A DNA stretch of 64,000 nt from Eukaryota sp. TZLM1-RC (Eukaryota; Protista; Metamonada: BaSk clade). Positions 3,796-64,000 of the stretch are shown one piece after another; positions within the stretch are counted from its first letter, which is position 1, and every line of letters begins with the position of its first letter. A program made the position numbers and the translations under genes. The stretch is taken from positions 1,364,001-1,428,000 of the forward strand of contig JAUPSS010000004.1 of NCBI GenBank assembly GCA_040285825.1, given 5' to 3'. The notes beneath the pieces are model-generated. The model did not search any database. It was given only the letters and a program-made list of their open reading frames with translations, and was not told the DNA's origin.

Positions 3796-5473
3796 TCATG
3801 AATCGCCACCAAAAACAATTTTACAACAAAGCAACCTTACTTCATTTATAACTGCTCCCAATTGTGGGTCATAATCACTTGTATCAATGACGTCATCAAG
3901 GTCAGAATTCAATCCACAAGCACATTTCATAAAAATCGAGTAAAATGGTCTGAAAACAAGTCTATTTTCGGCAACCTGGAGTAACTGTATTATTATATTC
4001 ATTGCAATCCTAGTACTTTGAGGTACAATTGTGGGGGAATCTAAAACTTCAACCAAACATTGGACAACATTACCAGTGCAAACAGAAATTTTAGAAGAAA
4101 TTCCAAAAATAGAAAAGTAATAAATTATTGATAATAAAGATAAATGTAACCTTGTAAATAATGGAAAATTTGGTGGTATTGGCTTATTTAAATTAAAAAG
4201 AATAGAGTGACAATAAGTTAAGCATTTGGAGACTGCTGGTACTAATAATTTTGCTGATAAAAATAACTTATCTTCATTTAATGGGTTCAAAAATAGACCA
4301 AAAAGACACGTGGCACTTGCTAACGTGATCGTGACGTTGGATGACGTCAGCAGTTGGGTCAAGGGTTTCAAAAATGGGGTCAGATCAAGTTGACTTATTC
4401 CAGGTTGATCTTTTTCAAAATTTAAAGGGGTTATTGACAAATAGGGACACATTGCAGCAAAGAATTCTAGAGAAGTCAAGAATATGACGTGATCAATTTG
4501 ATCTGATGACGTGTGCATTTCTAGAATAGTGCAGCTCAATTCTGGAAATTCTGGCCTTTCAGCGAAATATTTAGCATTTTCCTCAGATTGTGCCAAATTT
4601 CGAAGGATTAACAAACATTTATAAGACAAATCAAAATCAAAATGATTGACTTTGATTGATTGCTTCCAGTTATTAACTGCCACTTTAGCAATCCTTAACA
4701 CTCTGCTCAAAATCATTGGAAATCTAGGTGGAAAAAAGGAGACTGCCGAATCAGATGTTAATCGTAAAAGGTTATTTACCCCCTTCCTAATCAAAACATC
4801 ATCATGACAGTCAAGCCAACAAATAATCTTGTACAAACTTGAGTCCTCATCTTCGTACATTTGAAGTTCAATGTCATCTACGGGAGTGTAATCATACCTG
4901 AACAACGGTCTGGAGGTAATCTCTTCTAATTGGAGATCAAAATGCACGGTGGGGAGGACTAACTCAGGTTGTGGCTGAACAGGGGGTGGAGCAGGAGTGA
5001 GAGGGGGTTCATGGGCAAATCCTTCCTCAAGAGAGCCACCCCAATAGTGTACTATTTCGTATGCGTAGAGGAAGTTTTCGTAATGCTGAAATTAGATCAA
5101 GAATGCTTCAATATACCTTTTTGAGTAGGTAACCAGAGTTTGTAGAGGTTTCTGGTATTCCAATGGATTCAGCTACCTGACGGAATGAGCGGGATTTAGC
5201 AACAGCTTCCATGCCACCACGGAATGTGACGTTGCGGTAAAGTTGGAAGAGATCAACTTCTACGTGTCCAAGAGAAGGAATGCGTATGGTTACGTCCCGC
5301 TGTTTGTTAAATGATATGATGTTTTCAAAGAAAGTTTCTCTCTCAGTTTCAAGGATTTGATGAGGTAAGACAGGGGCTACTTGAGGAGGAGGCCCCCTAG
5401 CAGCATACATTCCAGGGTATGTGGAATGAGGTATACATTTACAAGGACATCGTCCATTAGGATGTGCATACAT
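3796..5473 (-). CDS. ARID-domain protein with C-terminal ARM-like helical region (SWI/SNF ARID-subunit-like); intron 5086-5116 (31 nt); 548 aa
   Basis: ARID signature VDLFQLYRNVTFRGGMEAV..VAESIG..GYLLKK|HYENFLYAYE is restored by splicing GTATAT..CTAATTTCAG; exons of 357 and 1290 nt keep frame. Confidence 0.88.
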
Positions 5474-18142: not shown

Positions 18143-18967
18143 ATGACCTTGAAGTTTGTTTTCCTCTAAGTCTTAACCACTAGGTTCCAGAAACTCTCAG
18201 ACGATCCTGATGTTAAGCATGCTCTTTCAGTCATCCTTGTGGTGATTGCCATTGTAGTGATTGTCTTTTTCTTTTTCTTCATTGGACCCAAGCCTCCCAA
18301 GAAGACTATCTGTGATCTGATCTGGAAAACCATTGATGGATTAGACGATCCTTTTGTTGTTACAATTGACGACGACGTCTTTCCCACTACCTCAAACGAT
18401 AGAGTAGAAGCAGTGACTGAAGCACTCGCTGAGGAAATTTCAGACCTTATTCCTAATGGTGAAGACCCTACTGATTATTTTACCCTGGGTGAACAACAAT
18501 ATGATCAGGATTCTGGCCAAGGCACCTATGTTGGTTGCATTGAAAACAAAAAATGCAGAAGGTGCTTCACTATTAATGTACAAATTAATGATGCTGCTCA
18601 AAGACTTGCTCAGTGTGTTCGGGAGATTGACACCGATGATGTATCTCTACCAACCCAATCTGTTGTCACAAGAGATGATGATCCACTCAATCCTTTTTTC
18701 GAAGAGGTTCGAGACGAATGTGTTGATGATGATGAATTGTTGTTTGGAATTATTCAACGCCAAGATGATGACCGCATGTGTCTTGTCTTCAGTGCAGAGG
18801 ACCCTACGGATGACCCTGAACCCTTTATTTTGTGCTTCGATTATGACTTCAACAACGATGGTAAGAAGAAGGCCAAGAAACTCACCAAGAAACGTCTTCT
18901 CAAAACCAAGAGTAAGAAGGTTAAAAGAGTTAAAAAATCCCGCCTTTCAAAAAAGTTGAAGGTTTAG
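18143..18967 (+). CDS. Novel type II membrane protein with acidic Cys-containing ectodomain and Lys-rich tail; intron 18154-18183 (30 nt)
   Basis: ATG ACC TTG AA|GTTTGT..TTAACCACTAG|G TTC gives MTLKFQKLSDDPDVKHALSVILVVIAIVVIVFFFFFI, in frame with ORF 18239-18967. Confidence 0.82.
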
Positions 18968-20596: not shown

Positions 20597-21421
20597 CTAA
20601 ACCTTCAACTTTTTTGAAAGGCGGGATTTTTTAACTCTTTTCACCTTCTTACTCTTGGTTTTGAGAAGACGTTTCTTGGTCAGTTTCTTGGCCTTCTTCC
20701 TACCATCGTTGTTGAAGTCATAATCGAAGCACAAATTAAAAGGTTCAGGGTCATCCGTAGGGTCCTCTGCAGCGAAGACAAGACACATGCGGTCATCATC
20801 TTGGCGTTGAATAATTCCAAACAACAATTCATCATCATCAACACATTCGTCTCGAACCTCTTCGAAAAAAGGATTGAGTGGATCATCATCTCTTGTGACA
20901 ACAGATTGGGTTGGTAGAGATACATCATCGGTATCAATCTCCCGAACACACTGAGCAAGTCTTTGAGCAGCATCATTAATTTGTACATTAATAGTGAAGC
21001 ACCTTCTGCATTTTTTGTTTTCAATGCAACCAACATAGGTGCCTTGGCCAGAATCCTGATCATATTGTTGTTCACCCAGGGTAAAATAATCAGTAGGGTC
21101 TTCACCATTAGGAATAAGGTCCGAAATTTCCTCAGCGAGTGCTTCAGTCACTGCTTCTACTCTATCGTTTGAGACAGTGGGAAAGACGTCGTCGTCAATT
21201 GTAACAACAAAAGGATCGTCTAATCCATCAATGGTTTTCCAGATCAGATCACAGATAGTCTTCTTGGGAGGCTTGGGTCCAATGAAGAAAAAGAAAAAGA
21301 CAATCACTACAATGGCAATCACCACAAGGATGACTGAAAGAGCATGCTTAACATCAGGATCGTCTGAGAGTTTCTGGAACCTAGTGGTTAAGACTTAGAG
21401 GAAAACAAACTTCAAGGTCAT
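20597..21421 (-). CDS. Inverted duplicate of 18143-18967; intron 21381-21410
   Basis: Mirror copy in the right palindrome arm with four amino-acid differences in the translated ORF. Confidence 0.82.
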
Positions 21422-58139: not shown

Positions 58140-59351
58140 ATGCCAACCCTTAACAACCCAACTCTTAATATATCCTTGAGCAAGGTTCACTCTAATGCTA
58201 AGATAATCTTGAACATCTGCCGAAAACACAACATTGAGCCTTGTGCTGTCACTAAAGGTGTTTGTGCTGACATCAAGATCGCTGAAGCACTCGTGAATGC
58301 TGGTTTCAATATGTTGGCGGATAGTCGTATGGAAAATCTCTTGGACTTAAGGATGGCGTTTCCCTCAATCAAGCTCTTGAATTTGCGTATCCCAATGATA
58401 AGTGAGATGGATCGTCTCGTTGAGACGGTGGATTATAGTATAATTTCGGAATGGGAATCTCTTATTGCCATGAATTCATCGGCCAAGAAATTCAACAAGG
58501 TCATGAAGGTTATTCCAATAATGGAACTTGGAGATCTCCGTGAAGGTATGCATGAAGAGGAGTTACTTGCATTGCTCCCTCATTTCGCTAATTACCACCC
58601 CAAACTTCACCCTAACTCAACAACGGTGTCTTCAGAGCTTGATGCACCTCTCAAAGACATTCAATCCAATAGGTGTAACCCTATAATTAACTCCAGTTGT
58701 AAGCTAGACAACATTTATCTTGCCGGAATAGCAGCGAACCACAAGTGTTTATCAGGAGTATTGCCGGATCACACTAACCTCGGCAAATTTGCTGAAATTG
58801 CAGACAAGGTTTGTTTTCGCTAACCCTAACCCTAGGTCAATAACCATTTTGATTTGGAAATTGTTTCTGGTGGCAATTCATCCGCATTCTACATGATGGA
58901 TTCTGGAAGTCTTCCTTCCATCATTAATAACTTACGCTTAGGAGAATCAGTGTTACTTGGCCGAGAACGAGCTTTTTGGAAACCCATTAGTGGTTGTTGT
59001 TCTGATGCCTTCACTATACATGCTGAAATAGTTGAACTCAAAAGTAAACAAAGTTTGCCCATAGGAACTATTGGAATGAATGCATTTGGGGAGACTCCTC
59101 CTCCTCCAAAAGATAAAGGTGTCATTAAGAGAGCAATTTTAGCAATAGGTGAGCAGGATATTGAATTTGAAAATTTGACTCCATTAGAGAACGGGGTTGA
59201 AATTTTGGGCGCGAGTTCAGATCATTTGATAGTCGATGTCAGTGGTTATAGGAGTAATCTGCGTATTGGAGATTCGTTAAGATTTGGTGTCAATTATTCC
59301 ACCATGATGAAGGCTTTTACTAGCAAATATGTAAATAAAAAGTATATTTAA
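58140..59351 (+). CDS. Ornithine/alanine racemase-family PLP enzyme (Orr/YhfX-like); intron 58809-58835 (27 nt)
   Basis: AVTK (PLP lysine), LADSR, LRIP, ELGDLREG, SGGNSS, NNLRLGE, AEIVELK.K.S.P.G, RAILAIG.QD, GASSDH; the intron joins the two ORFs in frame. Confidence 0.9.
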
Positions 59352-60155: not shown

Positions 60156-60755
60156 ATGGCAGACACACAAAATGATAACACTCCGGTACTAGAAGACCTC
60201 AAACGAGAGGACGATGGGTACAAGGCCAAGGACATCTCTCTTGAAGAAGCTCTCCAAGCCGACGCTGAAGATGAATCTCTTCGCAAATGGAAGGAGAGTC
60301 TTCTCACAGAGGCTGGTCCAATTGGAGGTTCCAAGGAAGTCAACCTGACGTCCTTCTCCCTCGTCTTTGGGGACGGACAAGCCCCCATCTCTGTCCCACT
60401 CAACGACCCTGCTGCCTTGGAAGAGCTGTCAAAAAACCCCATCATTTTGAAGGAAGGTATTGCCTTTAGATACAAAGTCACCTTTACTGTATCTGGGGAT
60501 ATTCTTTCTGGTCTCACCTTTTTAGCGTCCATCTACCGTCTCAAGATCCGTGCAGCGAAGCAGGAATATGTTTTAGGTTCTTATGCGCCACGTCAGAATG
60601 AACATGAAGTTGTGTTCCCAAGTGGTTTTGATGAGTATCTGTACACTCCTTCTGGTATTACAGGTAGGGGGACCTATTTAACTAGATGTGTTTTCACTGA
60701 TGATGATGGAAAAAAATATTTTGATTTTAGTTTTCACTTTAAGGTGGTCAAATAA
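60156..60755 (+). CDS. Rho GDP-dissociation inhibitor
   Basis: DAEDESLRKWKESLL, LKEG, LSGL, LGSYAP, PSG..GRGTY, FTDDD motifs. Confidence 0.95.
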   Translation: MADTQNDNTPVLEDLKREDDGYKAKDISLEEALQADAEDESLRKWKESLLTEAGPIGGSKEVNLTSFSLVFGDGQAPISVPLNDPAALEELSKNPIILKEGIAFRYKVTFTVSGDILSGLTFLASIYRLKIRAAKQEYVLGSYAPRQNEHEVVFPSGFDEYLYTPSGITGRGTYLTRCVFTDDDGKKYFDFSFHFKVVK

Positions 60756-62575: not shown

Positions 62576-63661
62576 GTCAATCGTGTTTACTGGCAAAACA
62601 GTATTGTATTTTTTGTTTTTAAGAGAATGTTGAAATTAAATTCTGGTTCACTCTTTCCTTTTGGGAAGTTTTCTGAATCTTTGGCAATTAATCGTTCTGA
62701 TGCAGGGGAGGCTGGCTTTGAGGATGTGGACTTTTAGTATTTCATGTTTTCATATTCCTTATGAGATAAATAAAATAACTTTCAATATAGATACAAACGT
62801 AGGACTCCTAACACATCATTGCTTAATGAATTGCAGGTATCTCACTAGTGAGTCCCATAGTATATACAGAATAACATTAAATAAAATTATCTTTTTCTTA
62901 ACCCACCATACAACTACATATAGTCTTACATCAAGCTATCATAATGCCTAGCGACAACCCAATTTCATAAGCTGATCTCAAAGCAATTCAACCTCAACTC
63001 TGGACAACCAATTGGCAATTGCAAATTGCTTGGATACATGAGCATTTATTCTATAACATAGCGTGTACAAATCACAAACAATTTATATTCAATATTCAGA
63101 CCAAAGTAAATGGATTCATATTGTTTCTCACCTTTGATATTGAACAAAATTCTCCTTCAGTTTTTGAAAGTTCAAATCCTTGATTGAGTATTCAGTATTT
63201 AAAACATTATACTGTTGTTCTATAGGGTAAACACTCACTTTTTGAATAGTTACCAATAAATCTTTCACCTATTGTTAACAGGTAACCTCAATTCCAAGCC
63301 CCCTTGAAAAAATGATTGATCATCAATATATTGTAATATCATAATATAATTTTCAAGACATTTTACCATGTGGTGATCCTTGGCACTCGCAGAAAAAGAT
63401 TCAAATAGACGATAACAAAATGAAATCGACTTTTAAAAGGAACTTTCACTTGGTTGGATTTTTTTTCGTTGCTGTTTTTTGGATTGTGGGTAACTTCCAT
63501 ACAACAAACAAACACAGTTGGAACATATAAAAAAACAAATTACACTGGAAATTCAACATGAAAATAATTTTATTCTAAACAACCTTTATGAATTATCCAG
63601 AGAAACAGTATAATCAATGTTTACACTGATTACTAGGGTTAAAAATCTTGAAAGAAATAGA

Positions 63662-63718
63662 TCAGTTTCACAGTTTAAAATCTTGTAGATCATAAGACCG
63701 TCGTGAAAGATTCATCAC
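63662..63718 (-). ncRNA. Intronic box C/D snoRNA, snR73/SNORD35-like (copy 1), in intron 63633-63744
   Basis: Box C GUGAUGA, guide UCACGACGGUCU complementary to the conserved LSU rRNA AGACCGUCGUGA, D' AUGA, box D CUGA. Confidence 0.85.
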
Positions 63719-63828
63719 ACGGGACCGAGAGGAAGAAAACATACTTGTGACAAGTGCACTAGTCATGGTGGACTACAGAACTGCATCACCAACTGGGTAA
63801 CTAGGGTTAACATTGTCAAAAAAATAGT

Positions 63829-63885
63829 TCAGTTTCACAGTGTAAAATCTTGTAGATCATAAGACCGTCGTGAAAGATTCATCAC
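63829..63885 (-). ncRNA. Intronic box C/D snoRNA, snR73/SNORD35-like (copy 2), in intron 63801-63911
   Basis: Same boxes and guide; one nucleotide differs from copy 1 between box C and box D. Confidence 0.85.
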
Positions 63886-64000
63886 ATAAGATTGAGAGGA
63901 AGAAAACATACTTGGGACATGAGCAATAGTCAAGATTGAGTAGGGAACCGCATAACAGACTCCTCTACCACTAGGGTTAACATTCTTGAAAGAAGTGGTT

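Follow-up and report, generated by a model that had tools for sequence, protein, structure and literature searches.

A putative spliced snoRNA host gene, apparently not protein-coding, with the same minimal box C/D RNA in its last three introns in a skoliomonad metamonad

Introduction

What is encoded by a tandem array in which short and strongly diverged segments alternate with segments that carry one nearly identical box C/D RNA, in the genome of a protist with introns of some 30 nt? The array lies on the minus strand at the right end of a window of 64,000 nucleotides from Eukaryota sp. TZLM1-RC (assembly GCA_040285825.1, contig JAUPSS010000004.1). A first reading of the window, made from its letters alone (the sequence-only reading below), had proposed introns with snoRNAs in a non-coding host gene, in a mini-intron protist with intron-poor relatives. 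The latter description fits a skoliomonad metamonad.

Animals and fungi are well known to have non-coding host genes of the UHG type, in which each intron holds one snoRNA. In Giardia and Trichomonas, on the other hand, intronic snoRNAs have been judged highly unlikely, and Giardia expresses its non-coding RNAs from mono- or dicistronic genes that carry a 12-nt motif for 3′ processing. We argue below that the array is rather likely to be a spliced host gene for snoRNAs, apparently without a protein product, and that its last three introns would each contain the same minimal box C/D snoRNA.

Results

The repeat units and their surroundings

The final 370 bases of the window comprise two full units together with the end of a third, and the window edge (64000) coincides with the final base of box D in copy A. 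For the sequence past the edge we used the public contig (locus L001), in which the coordinate is the window coordinate minus 50155, checked base by base and anchored on the exact RhoGDI protein encoded at 60156–60752. Positions above 64000 are given below as window equivalents. In window and contig together, there are three tandem units of exon plus intron on the minus strand, the third being completed beyond the window edge. The extension to the right that had been proposed for counting the units thus yields one complete further copy, with an intron of 112 nt.

Read along the minus strand, the putative gene comprises a putative mini-intron I0 (64212–64174, 39 nt), host exon 1 (64173–64083, 91 nt), intron A (64082–63971, 112 nt, acceptor at 63971), host exon 2 (63970–63912, 59 nt), intron B (63911–63801, 111 nt), host exon 3 (63800–63745, 56 nt), and intron C, the last with a snoRNA (63744–63633, 112 nt), which starts with GTATGT and ends with the branch/3′ splice motif TTAACCCTAG. 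A putative terminal host exon follows from 63632, covered here down to 63433; there is an AATAAA-like string, and the nearest similarity to an LTR terminus begins at 62902. Intron A is cut by the window edge: the part with snoRNA copy A lies beyond it (L001 13846–13927, equivalent to 64001–64082), and the part inside the window (63971–64000) comprises the final base of box D and a 29-nt trailer, again ending with TTAACCCTAG. The sequence-only reading had placed introns at 63801–63911 and 63633–63744 and a third acceptor at 63971, in units of ~170 bp with exons of 56–59 nt. All these positions hold on the minus strand, the period being 167–170 nt and the exons 56 and 59 nt long. The divergence of the exons is too great for Tandem Repeats Finder, which left the array unreported.

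The host occupies part of a gap of ~2.2 kb between two LTR-related sequences. On the left is the terminus of a diverged solo LTR (71 bp, 62832–62902), and on the right is a full retroelement, of which the 5′ LTR begins at window-equivalent 65075 (L001 14920–14986 = 65075–65141). The 71-bp stretch common to the two is 83% identical. The public annotation, which was trained on RNA-seq, places no gene between L001 11902 and 15091. Directly upstream of I0, on the minus strand, there is a purine-rich stretch of ~300 nt (68–76% purine; window-equivalent 64213–64505, L001 14058–14350), which may be the first exon of the host or its promoter region. The RhoGDI protein of this locus is 70–71% identical to proteins in Eukaryota sp. 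TZLM3-RCL and GEM-RC1. No synteny with this locus is seen at the RhoGDI loci of Skoliomonas sp. RCL (L002) and GEMRC (L003), which contain no copy of the guide.

Splice signals of the long introns

The introns with a snoRNA are 111–112 nt long; they start with GTATGT and end with TTAACCCTAG. As a reference we used introns reconstructed from the public gene models nearby (from gene span and product length). The annotated neighbouring introns measure 26, 27, and 30 nt in this genome and 28–32 nt in two sister genomes. The introns of the array had been described as about four times longer than the others, which agrees with 111–112 nt against 26–30 nt. The reference introns start with GTWTGT (with one GTATTT) and end with A-Y-NN(T/A)AG; the spacing from the branch adenosine to the 3′ splice site is constant. 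The snoRNA introns carry exactly these mini-intron signals of the genome, with TTAAC-CCTAG at the 3′ end in all three.

The distribution of the 3′ motif points in the same direction. In the window plus 6.7 kb, searched on both strands (141 kb), AACCCTAG occurs five times, namely in the three snoRNA introns, in the intron of a racemase-like gene (58809–58835), and in I0 of the host. Each occurrence ends a GT...AG interval, and each has GTWTRT upstream at intron distance. The 18 nt at the 5′ end and the 10 nt at the 3′ end that are invariant in the snoRNA introns resemble, taken together, one 28-nt mini-intron (compare those at 18154 and 58809). The long introns look, from their sequence, like mini-introns of ~28 nt with a cassette of ~84 nt (an 8-nt linker, the 57-nt snoRNA, and a 19-nt trailer) between the 5′ half and the branch/3′ splice motif.

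Elsewhere in the window, a candidate mini-intron of 30 nt is present in two inverted copies, at 18154–18183 on the plus strand and at 21410–21381 on the minus strand, with GTTTGTTTTCCTCT at the start and TTAACCACTAG at the end. Both are preceded by an 11-nt first exon (ATG ACC TTG AA) and followed by an ORF of 260 codons, which suggests a duplicated gene pair with an intron close to the start codon.

A pattern scan for other C/D cassettes flanked by splice signals gave just two matches, at position 4838 of the window and at position 10870 of L003. Both are inside ORFs and are probably spurious. The one in the window (4838–4724, minus strand) is a GT...AG interval of 115 nt with C- and D-like boxes, within an ORF of 383 codons (3796–4947), and is probably due to chance.

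Boxes and folding of the small RNA

Each long intron contains one box C/D core, with 57 nt from C to D in the three copies. The order is GUGAUGA (box C), a spacer of 18 nt, AUGA (box D′), a hairpin of 5 bp, AGAUUU, a spacer of 12 nt, and CUGA (box D). In copy B the core spans 63885–63829, from the start of box C to the end of box D; in copy C it spans 63718–63662, with box C at 63718–63712, the D′ guide spacer at 63711–63694, the D′ AUGA at 63693–63690, and box D at 63665–63662, all on the minus strand. The C, D′, and D boxes and the 57-nt length had been read from the letters, and they are found as described (GTGATGA starting at 63718 and 63885, CTGA ending at 63662 and 63829). The elements of a box C/D RNA, that is, terminal C and D boxes with internal D′ and C′ boxes, are present in each of the three copies. 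Box C′ is degenerate, with AGAUUU here and UGAUUC in the metagenomic homologues described below. The single base that varies among the cores lies 10 nt ahead of box D and is C in copy B and A in the other two. The 12-nt core of the guide, UCACGACGGUCU, is confined within the window to the copies of the array, with 0.04 matches expected by chance.

Folding gave no significant secondary structure (z between −1.6 and +1.0). A terminal or external stem is absent from all three copies: the immediate flanks pair at +0.6 to +2.2 kcal/mol, and wider flanks do no better than shuffled sequences. The metagenomic homologues differ in this respect, with a terminal or external stem present. The terminal stem is often missing from intron-encoded snoRNAs and is not strictly required. 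Its absence here fits, without proving it, an assembly that relies on the intron context.

Mosaic conservation among the three units

Conservation is taken here from the alignment of the three paralogous units, to which gene conversion could contribute. Invariant columns number 30 of 59 in the exon, 18 of 18 in the 5′ splice site with its pyrimidine tract, 3 of 8 in the linker, 56 of 57 in the snoRNA from C to D, 10 of 19 in the trailer, and 10 of 10 in the branch/3′ splice motif. Invariant columns make up 84 of 85 in the constrained blocks; exons, linker, and trailer together have 43 of 86 (Fisher p = 5.5e-15). Within the introns, the splice signals reach 28/28, and linker and trailer together 13/27. 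Such invariant blocks around a hypervariable linker of 8 nt fit selection on both the snoRNA and the splice signals, as judged from the aligned units, and not a simple conversion tract.

That the exons are homologous to one another follows from the BLAST alignments, which pass through them; in pairwise comparisons, the exons are now 60–70% identical. Having drifted to that level, they indicate a duplication of the whole exon-plus-intron unit that is not recent. Two claims of the sequence-only reading are borne out here, the one that the exons are far more diverged than the snoRNA cores, which differ at one base, and the one that the array was amplified by duplication of exon–intron units, as the exons align over their drifted sequences.

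The same alignment bears on whether the array is silent. The units could be pseudogenised snoRNA copies decaying between retrotransposon insertions and kept uniform by recent gene conversion, in line with the LTR-related sequences on both sides and with a genome reported as 55% repetitive. However, conversion tracts cannot explain invariant blocks that are split by the hypervariable 8-nt linker in all three units. In addition, boxes and guide are intact in each copy, and the array unit has no copy elsewhere in the window or in the sister loci compared. We regard a decaying repeat as very improbable.

A second possibility is an array that is active without splicing, either tandem and polycistronic or with independent transcription of each unit. 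The snoRNAs would then be released by endo- and exonucleases, and the splice-like motifs would be leftovers of the duplicated unit. There are precedents in plants, trypanosomatids, Euglena, the snR72–78 cluster of yeast, and the dicistrons of Giardia; tandem snoRNA repeats are common in protists, and the metamonad snoRNAs known so far come from mono- or dicistronic genes, with processing at a 3′ motif. Against this stands the complete invariance of the 5′ splice site with the next 12 nt and of the 10-nt branch/3′ splice-site motif, next to a linker and a trailer that vary as given above. Moreover, the motifs are those of the mini-introns in coding genes, AACCCTAG being found otherwise only at intron ends, and the trailers, compared by eye with the consensus, have no strict match to the 12-nt processing motif of Giardia. 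Release from an unspliced array is, on this evidence, unlikely, and the preferred reading stays that of a spliced host.

Coding potential of the host

The spliced model was assessed exon by exon with tracking of the phase (exons of 56–91 nt). All three frames that enter exon 1 meet a stop within exon 1, and exons 2 and 3 have stops in all frames. In a codon-by-codon walk along the exon chain, the ATG ORFs that reach into the exons beside the snoRNA introns are 22 codons long at most. The statement of the sequence-only reading that all spliced frames stop before the last intron is thus on the safe side, a stop being present already in the first exon that flanks a snoRNA. The host proposed there, non-coding in the style of GAS5 or UHG, likewise finds support in the predicted structure, with one snoRNA in each splice-flanked intron and no ORF of more than 22 codons across the exons.

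Between the two LTR sequences, the longest ORF is one of 48 codons on the minus strand (~64741–64595, L001 14440–14586), which starts with ATG, ends in three cysteines, and precedes the modelled exons. The host could then be protein-coding, with the snoRNA introns in the UTR of a gene for a small protein such as this one or with exons that encode a micropeptide. The ORF precedes the putative first intron by ~385 nt, and many snoRNA hosts elsewhere are coding genes. It belongs, however, to no Pfam family, a search of 5.8 billion proteins, including the proteomes of sister species, gave no homologue, and no gene is annotated there. The exons between the snoRNAs, for their part, stop in all frames and diverge at a near-neutral rate. 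The 48-codon ORF is probably not a gene, and a coding host seems quite unlikely to us.

Family and predicted rRNA target

The sequence-only reading had named snR73 and SNORD35 as the Rfam families to be compared with the array. At the gathering thresholds, Rfam gives no match anywhere in the window, so that family membership in this sense does not hold. In E-value mode, matches with an identical guide are present below the thresholds: sn3071 of C. elegans (E = 0.016 and 0.031, the latter for copy C) and the plant family snoZ161_228 of clan CL00056 (E = 0.068 and 0.17, the latter for copy C). The scores of the array copies are ~23 bits where the gathering thresholds are 40–45; for snoZ161_228, where the threshold is 45 bits, the three copies score 23.3, 21.8, and 23.2, which is below the score of a family member. 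In the consensus of both sn3071 and snoZ161_228, the guide is the same and is placed 2 nt ahead of the D′ box. Other sub-threshold matches (TtnuCD21, mir-221, RybB, and similar ones) were set aside as similarities of boxes or of AT-richness only. We did not observe any further Rfam-like RNA in the host region.

Metagenome contigs were scanned with the pattern C box-N3-8-UUCACGACGGUCUU. The scan returned 26 loci, of which ~9 are clearly eukaryotic snoRNAs. The nine eukaryotic homologues share the layout of a C box, 3–8 nt, UUCACGACGGUCUU, and D′, and in seven of them D′ is AUGA as in the array. The two shortest (on contigs L022 and L028, 58–59 nt) have SNORD35 (RF00211, CL00056) as the best Rfam match, with 29 bits against a gathering threshold of 36. 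Several homologues lie within clusters of snoRNAs (U14, SNORD24, SNORD61, and others). Contig L028 carries U14-, SNORD61-, and U35-like RNAs; contig L016 carries SNORD24 (62.5 bits, above threshold) with SNORD70-like and U35-like RNAs; and contig L010 carries snoZ122 (above threshold) with snoR1-like and U35-like RNAs.

In E. coli 23S rRNA, positions 2587–2598 agree with the guide complement at 11 of 12 bases. The base opposite the fifth nucleotide upstream of D′ is 2590 of E. coli 23S, in domain V, between U2585 and A2602. We take the eukaryotic LSU target to read AGACCGUCGUGA, and the complementarity of the guide to it rests on the universal conservation of this segment. In yeast, snR73 guides Cm2959 of 25S rRNA. 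The homologue of snR73/U35 in Neurospora, CD31, is intronic and uses its D′ guide. As guide and register are identical to those of the SNORD35/snR73 families, the same target C is predicted. The D′ guide is thus supported as one that would select the LSU C equivalent to yeast Cm2959. The sequence-only reading had predicted that C by the D′+5 rule; the rule maps it to 2590 of E. coli, and the register is that of the family consensus. By its predicted target, the RNA would be an equivalent of SNORD35/snR73; by Rfam score, it is not a member of the family.

The spacer before box D

The 12-nt spacer before box D (63666–63677 in copy C, 63833–63844 in copy B) reads UAAACUGUGAAA; copy B has C as its third base. 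The string GUGAAA ahead of box D (by 0–1 nt) is common to the array RNA and to the homologues on L016, L022, and L028, with an offset of one nucleotide relative to box D. The GUGAAA spacer can pair with CUUUCAC in the D′ guide of the same RNA (7 bp, −5.9 kcal/mol). In E. coli 23S rRNA, no meaningful match to the complement of the spacer was seen. The spacer may serve as a second guide or as an element of structure, or it may be due to chance; its conservation could reflect a second guide or an autoinhibitory element. In the former case, the target may contain UUUCACAGU(U/G)UA by the +5 rule.

Discussion

A possible pathway

For a spliced host of this kind, the following pathway can be proposed. 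The gene would be transcribed by Pol II and the transcript spliced at GTATGT and TTAAC-CCTAG. The lariat would be debranched, and exonucleases would trim the intron to the core protected by the snoRNP, leaving an RNA of ~60–65 nt. The spliced exons would be a by-product, and the host RNA would decay. In the snoRNP, the 18-nt spacer between C and D′ would pair over 12–14 bp with LSU AGACCGUCGUGA(GA), and fibrillarin would thereby be placed on the first C of the target (2590 of E. coli 23S, Cm2959 of yeast) for 2′-O-methylation.

The resemblance of the long introns to extended mini-introns allows a more daring extension. The introns of 111–112 nt could be spliceable only as mini-introns in which the snoRNA cassette is compacted by co-transcriptional assembly of the snoRNP, so that splicing and snoRNP assembly would be interdependent, and the layout would be ancestral to metamonads and lost in Giardia and Trichomonas. 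Compaction of the cassette would explain the missing terminal stem, the fixed flanks of 26 nt and 28–29 nt, and the nearly equal lengths of the introns. We offer this extension as a speculation that is doubtful as a whole.

What the locus would mean

Should the preferred reading of a spliced, non-coding host be correct, a free-living, anaerobic sister lineage of Fornicata would possess intronic snoRNAs, which would change the picture of snoRNA genes in Metamonada, known mainly from Giardia and Trichomonas, where they are free-standing. The presence in Metamonada of a design with one snoRNA per intron and disposable exons would then support an early eukaryotic origin of that design, with loss in the parasites. 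The locus also offers a natural test of how a spliceosome of mini-introns handles introns of four times the usual length. In practical terms, candidate snoRNA genes and a putative spliced non-coding gene are missing from the public annotation of the genome. The literature search found no report of intronic snoRNAs in other metamonads; the layout of the gene is well known and, as far as the literature was searched, new for this branch of life.

Comparison with known systems

With the RNAs of the SNORD35 (U35)/snR73/Z161-Z228/sn3071 type, the array RNA has in common the core of the D′ guide, UCACGACGGUC, 2 nt before D′ and right after box C. It differs in its length (a core of 57 nt against models of 77–93 nt), in the lack of a terminal stem, and in AUGA as the D′ box; no sequence similarity is seen beyond guide and boxes.

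The snoRNAs of Giardia and Trichomonas are likewise those of Metamonada and are compact box C/D RNAs. The array snoRNAs differ from them in being flanked by splice signals, instead of being mono- or dicistronic with a 3′ motif. The introns of Giardia and Trichomonas have a fused motif for branch point and 3′ splice site, in which they may resemble the introns of the array.

The closest likeness in gene layout is to UHG and GAS5 of mammals and to the UHG-like clusters of Neurospora, where, as here, the exons are short and poorly conserved, the ORFs are tiny, and the snoRNAs are far better conserved. In contrast to these hosts, in which the introns carry different snoRNAs, the array consists of paralogous copies of one snoRNA. 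Its ground plan is that of mini-introns of 26–30 nt, and the host is a putative gene, read from its sequence.
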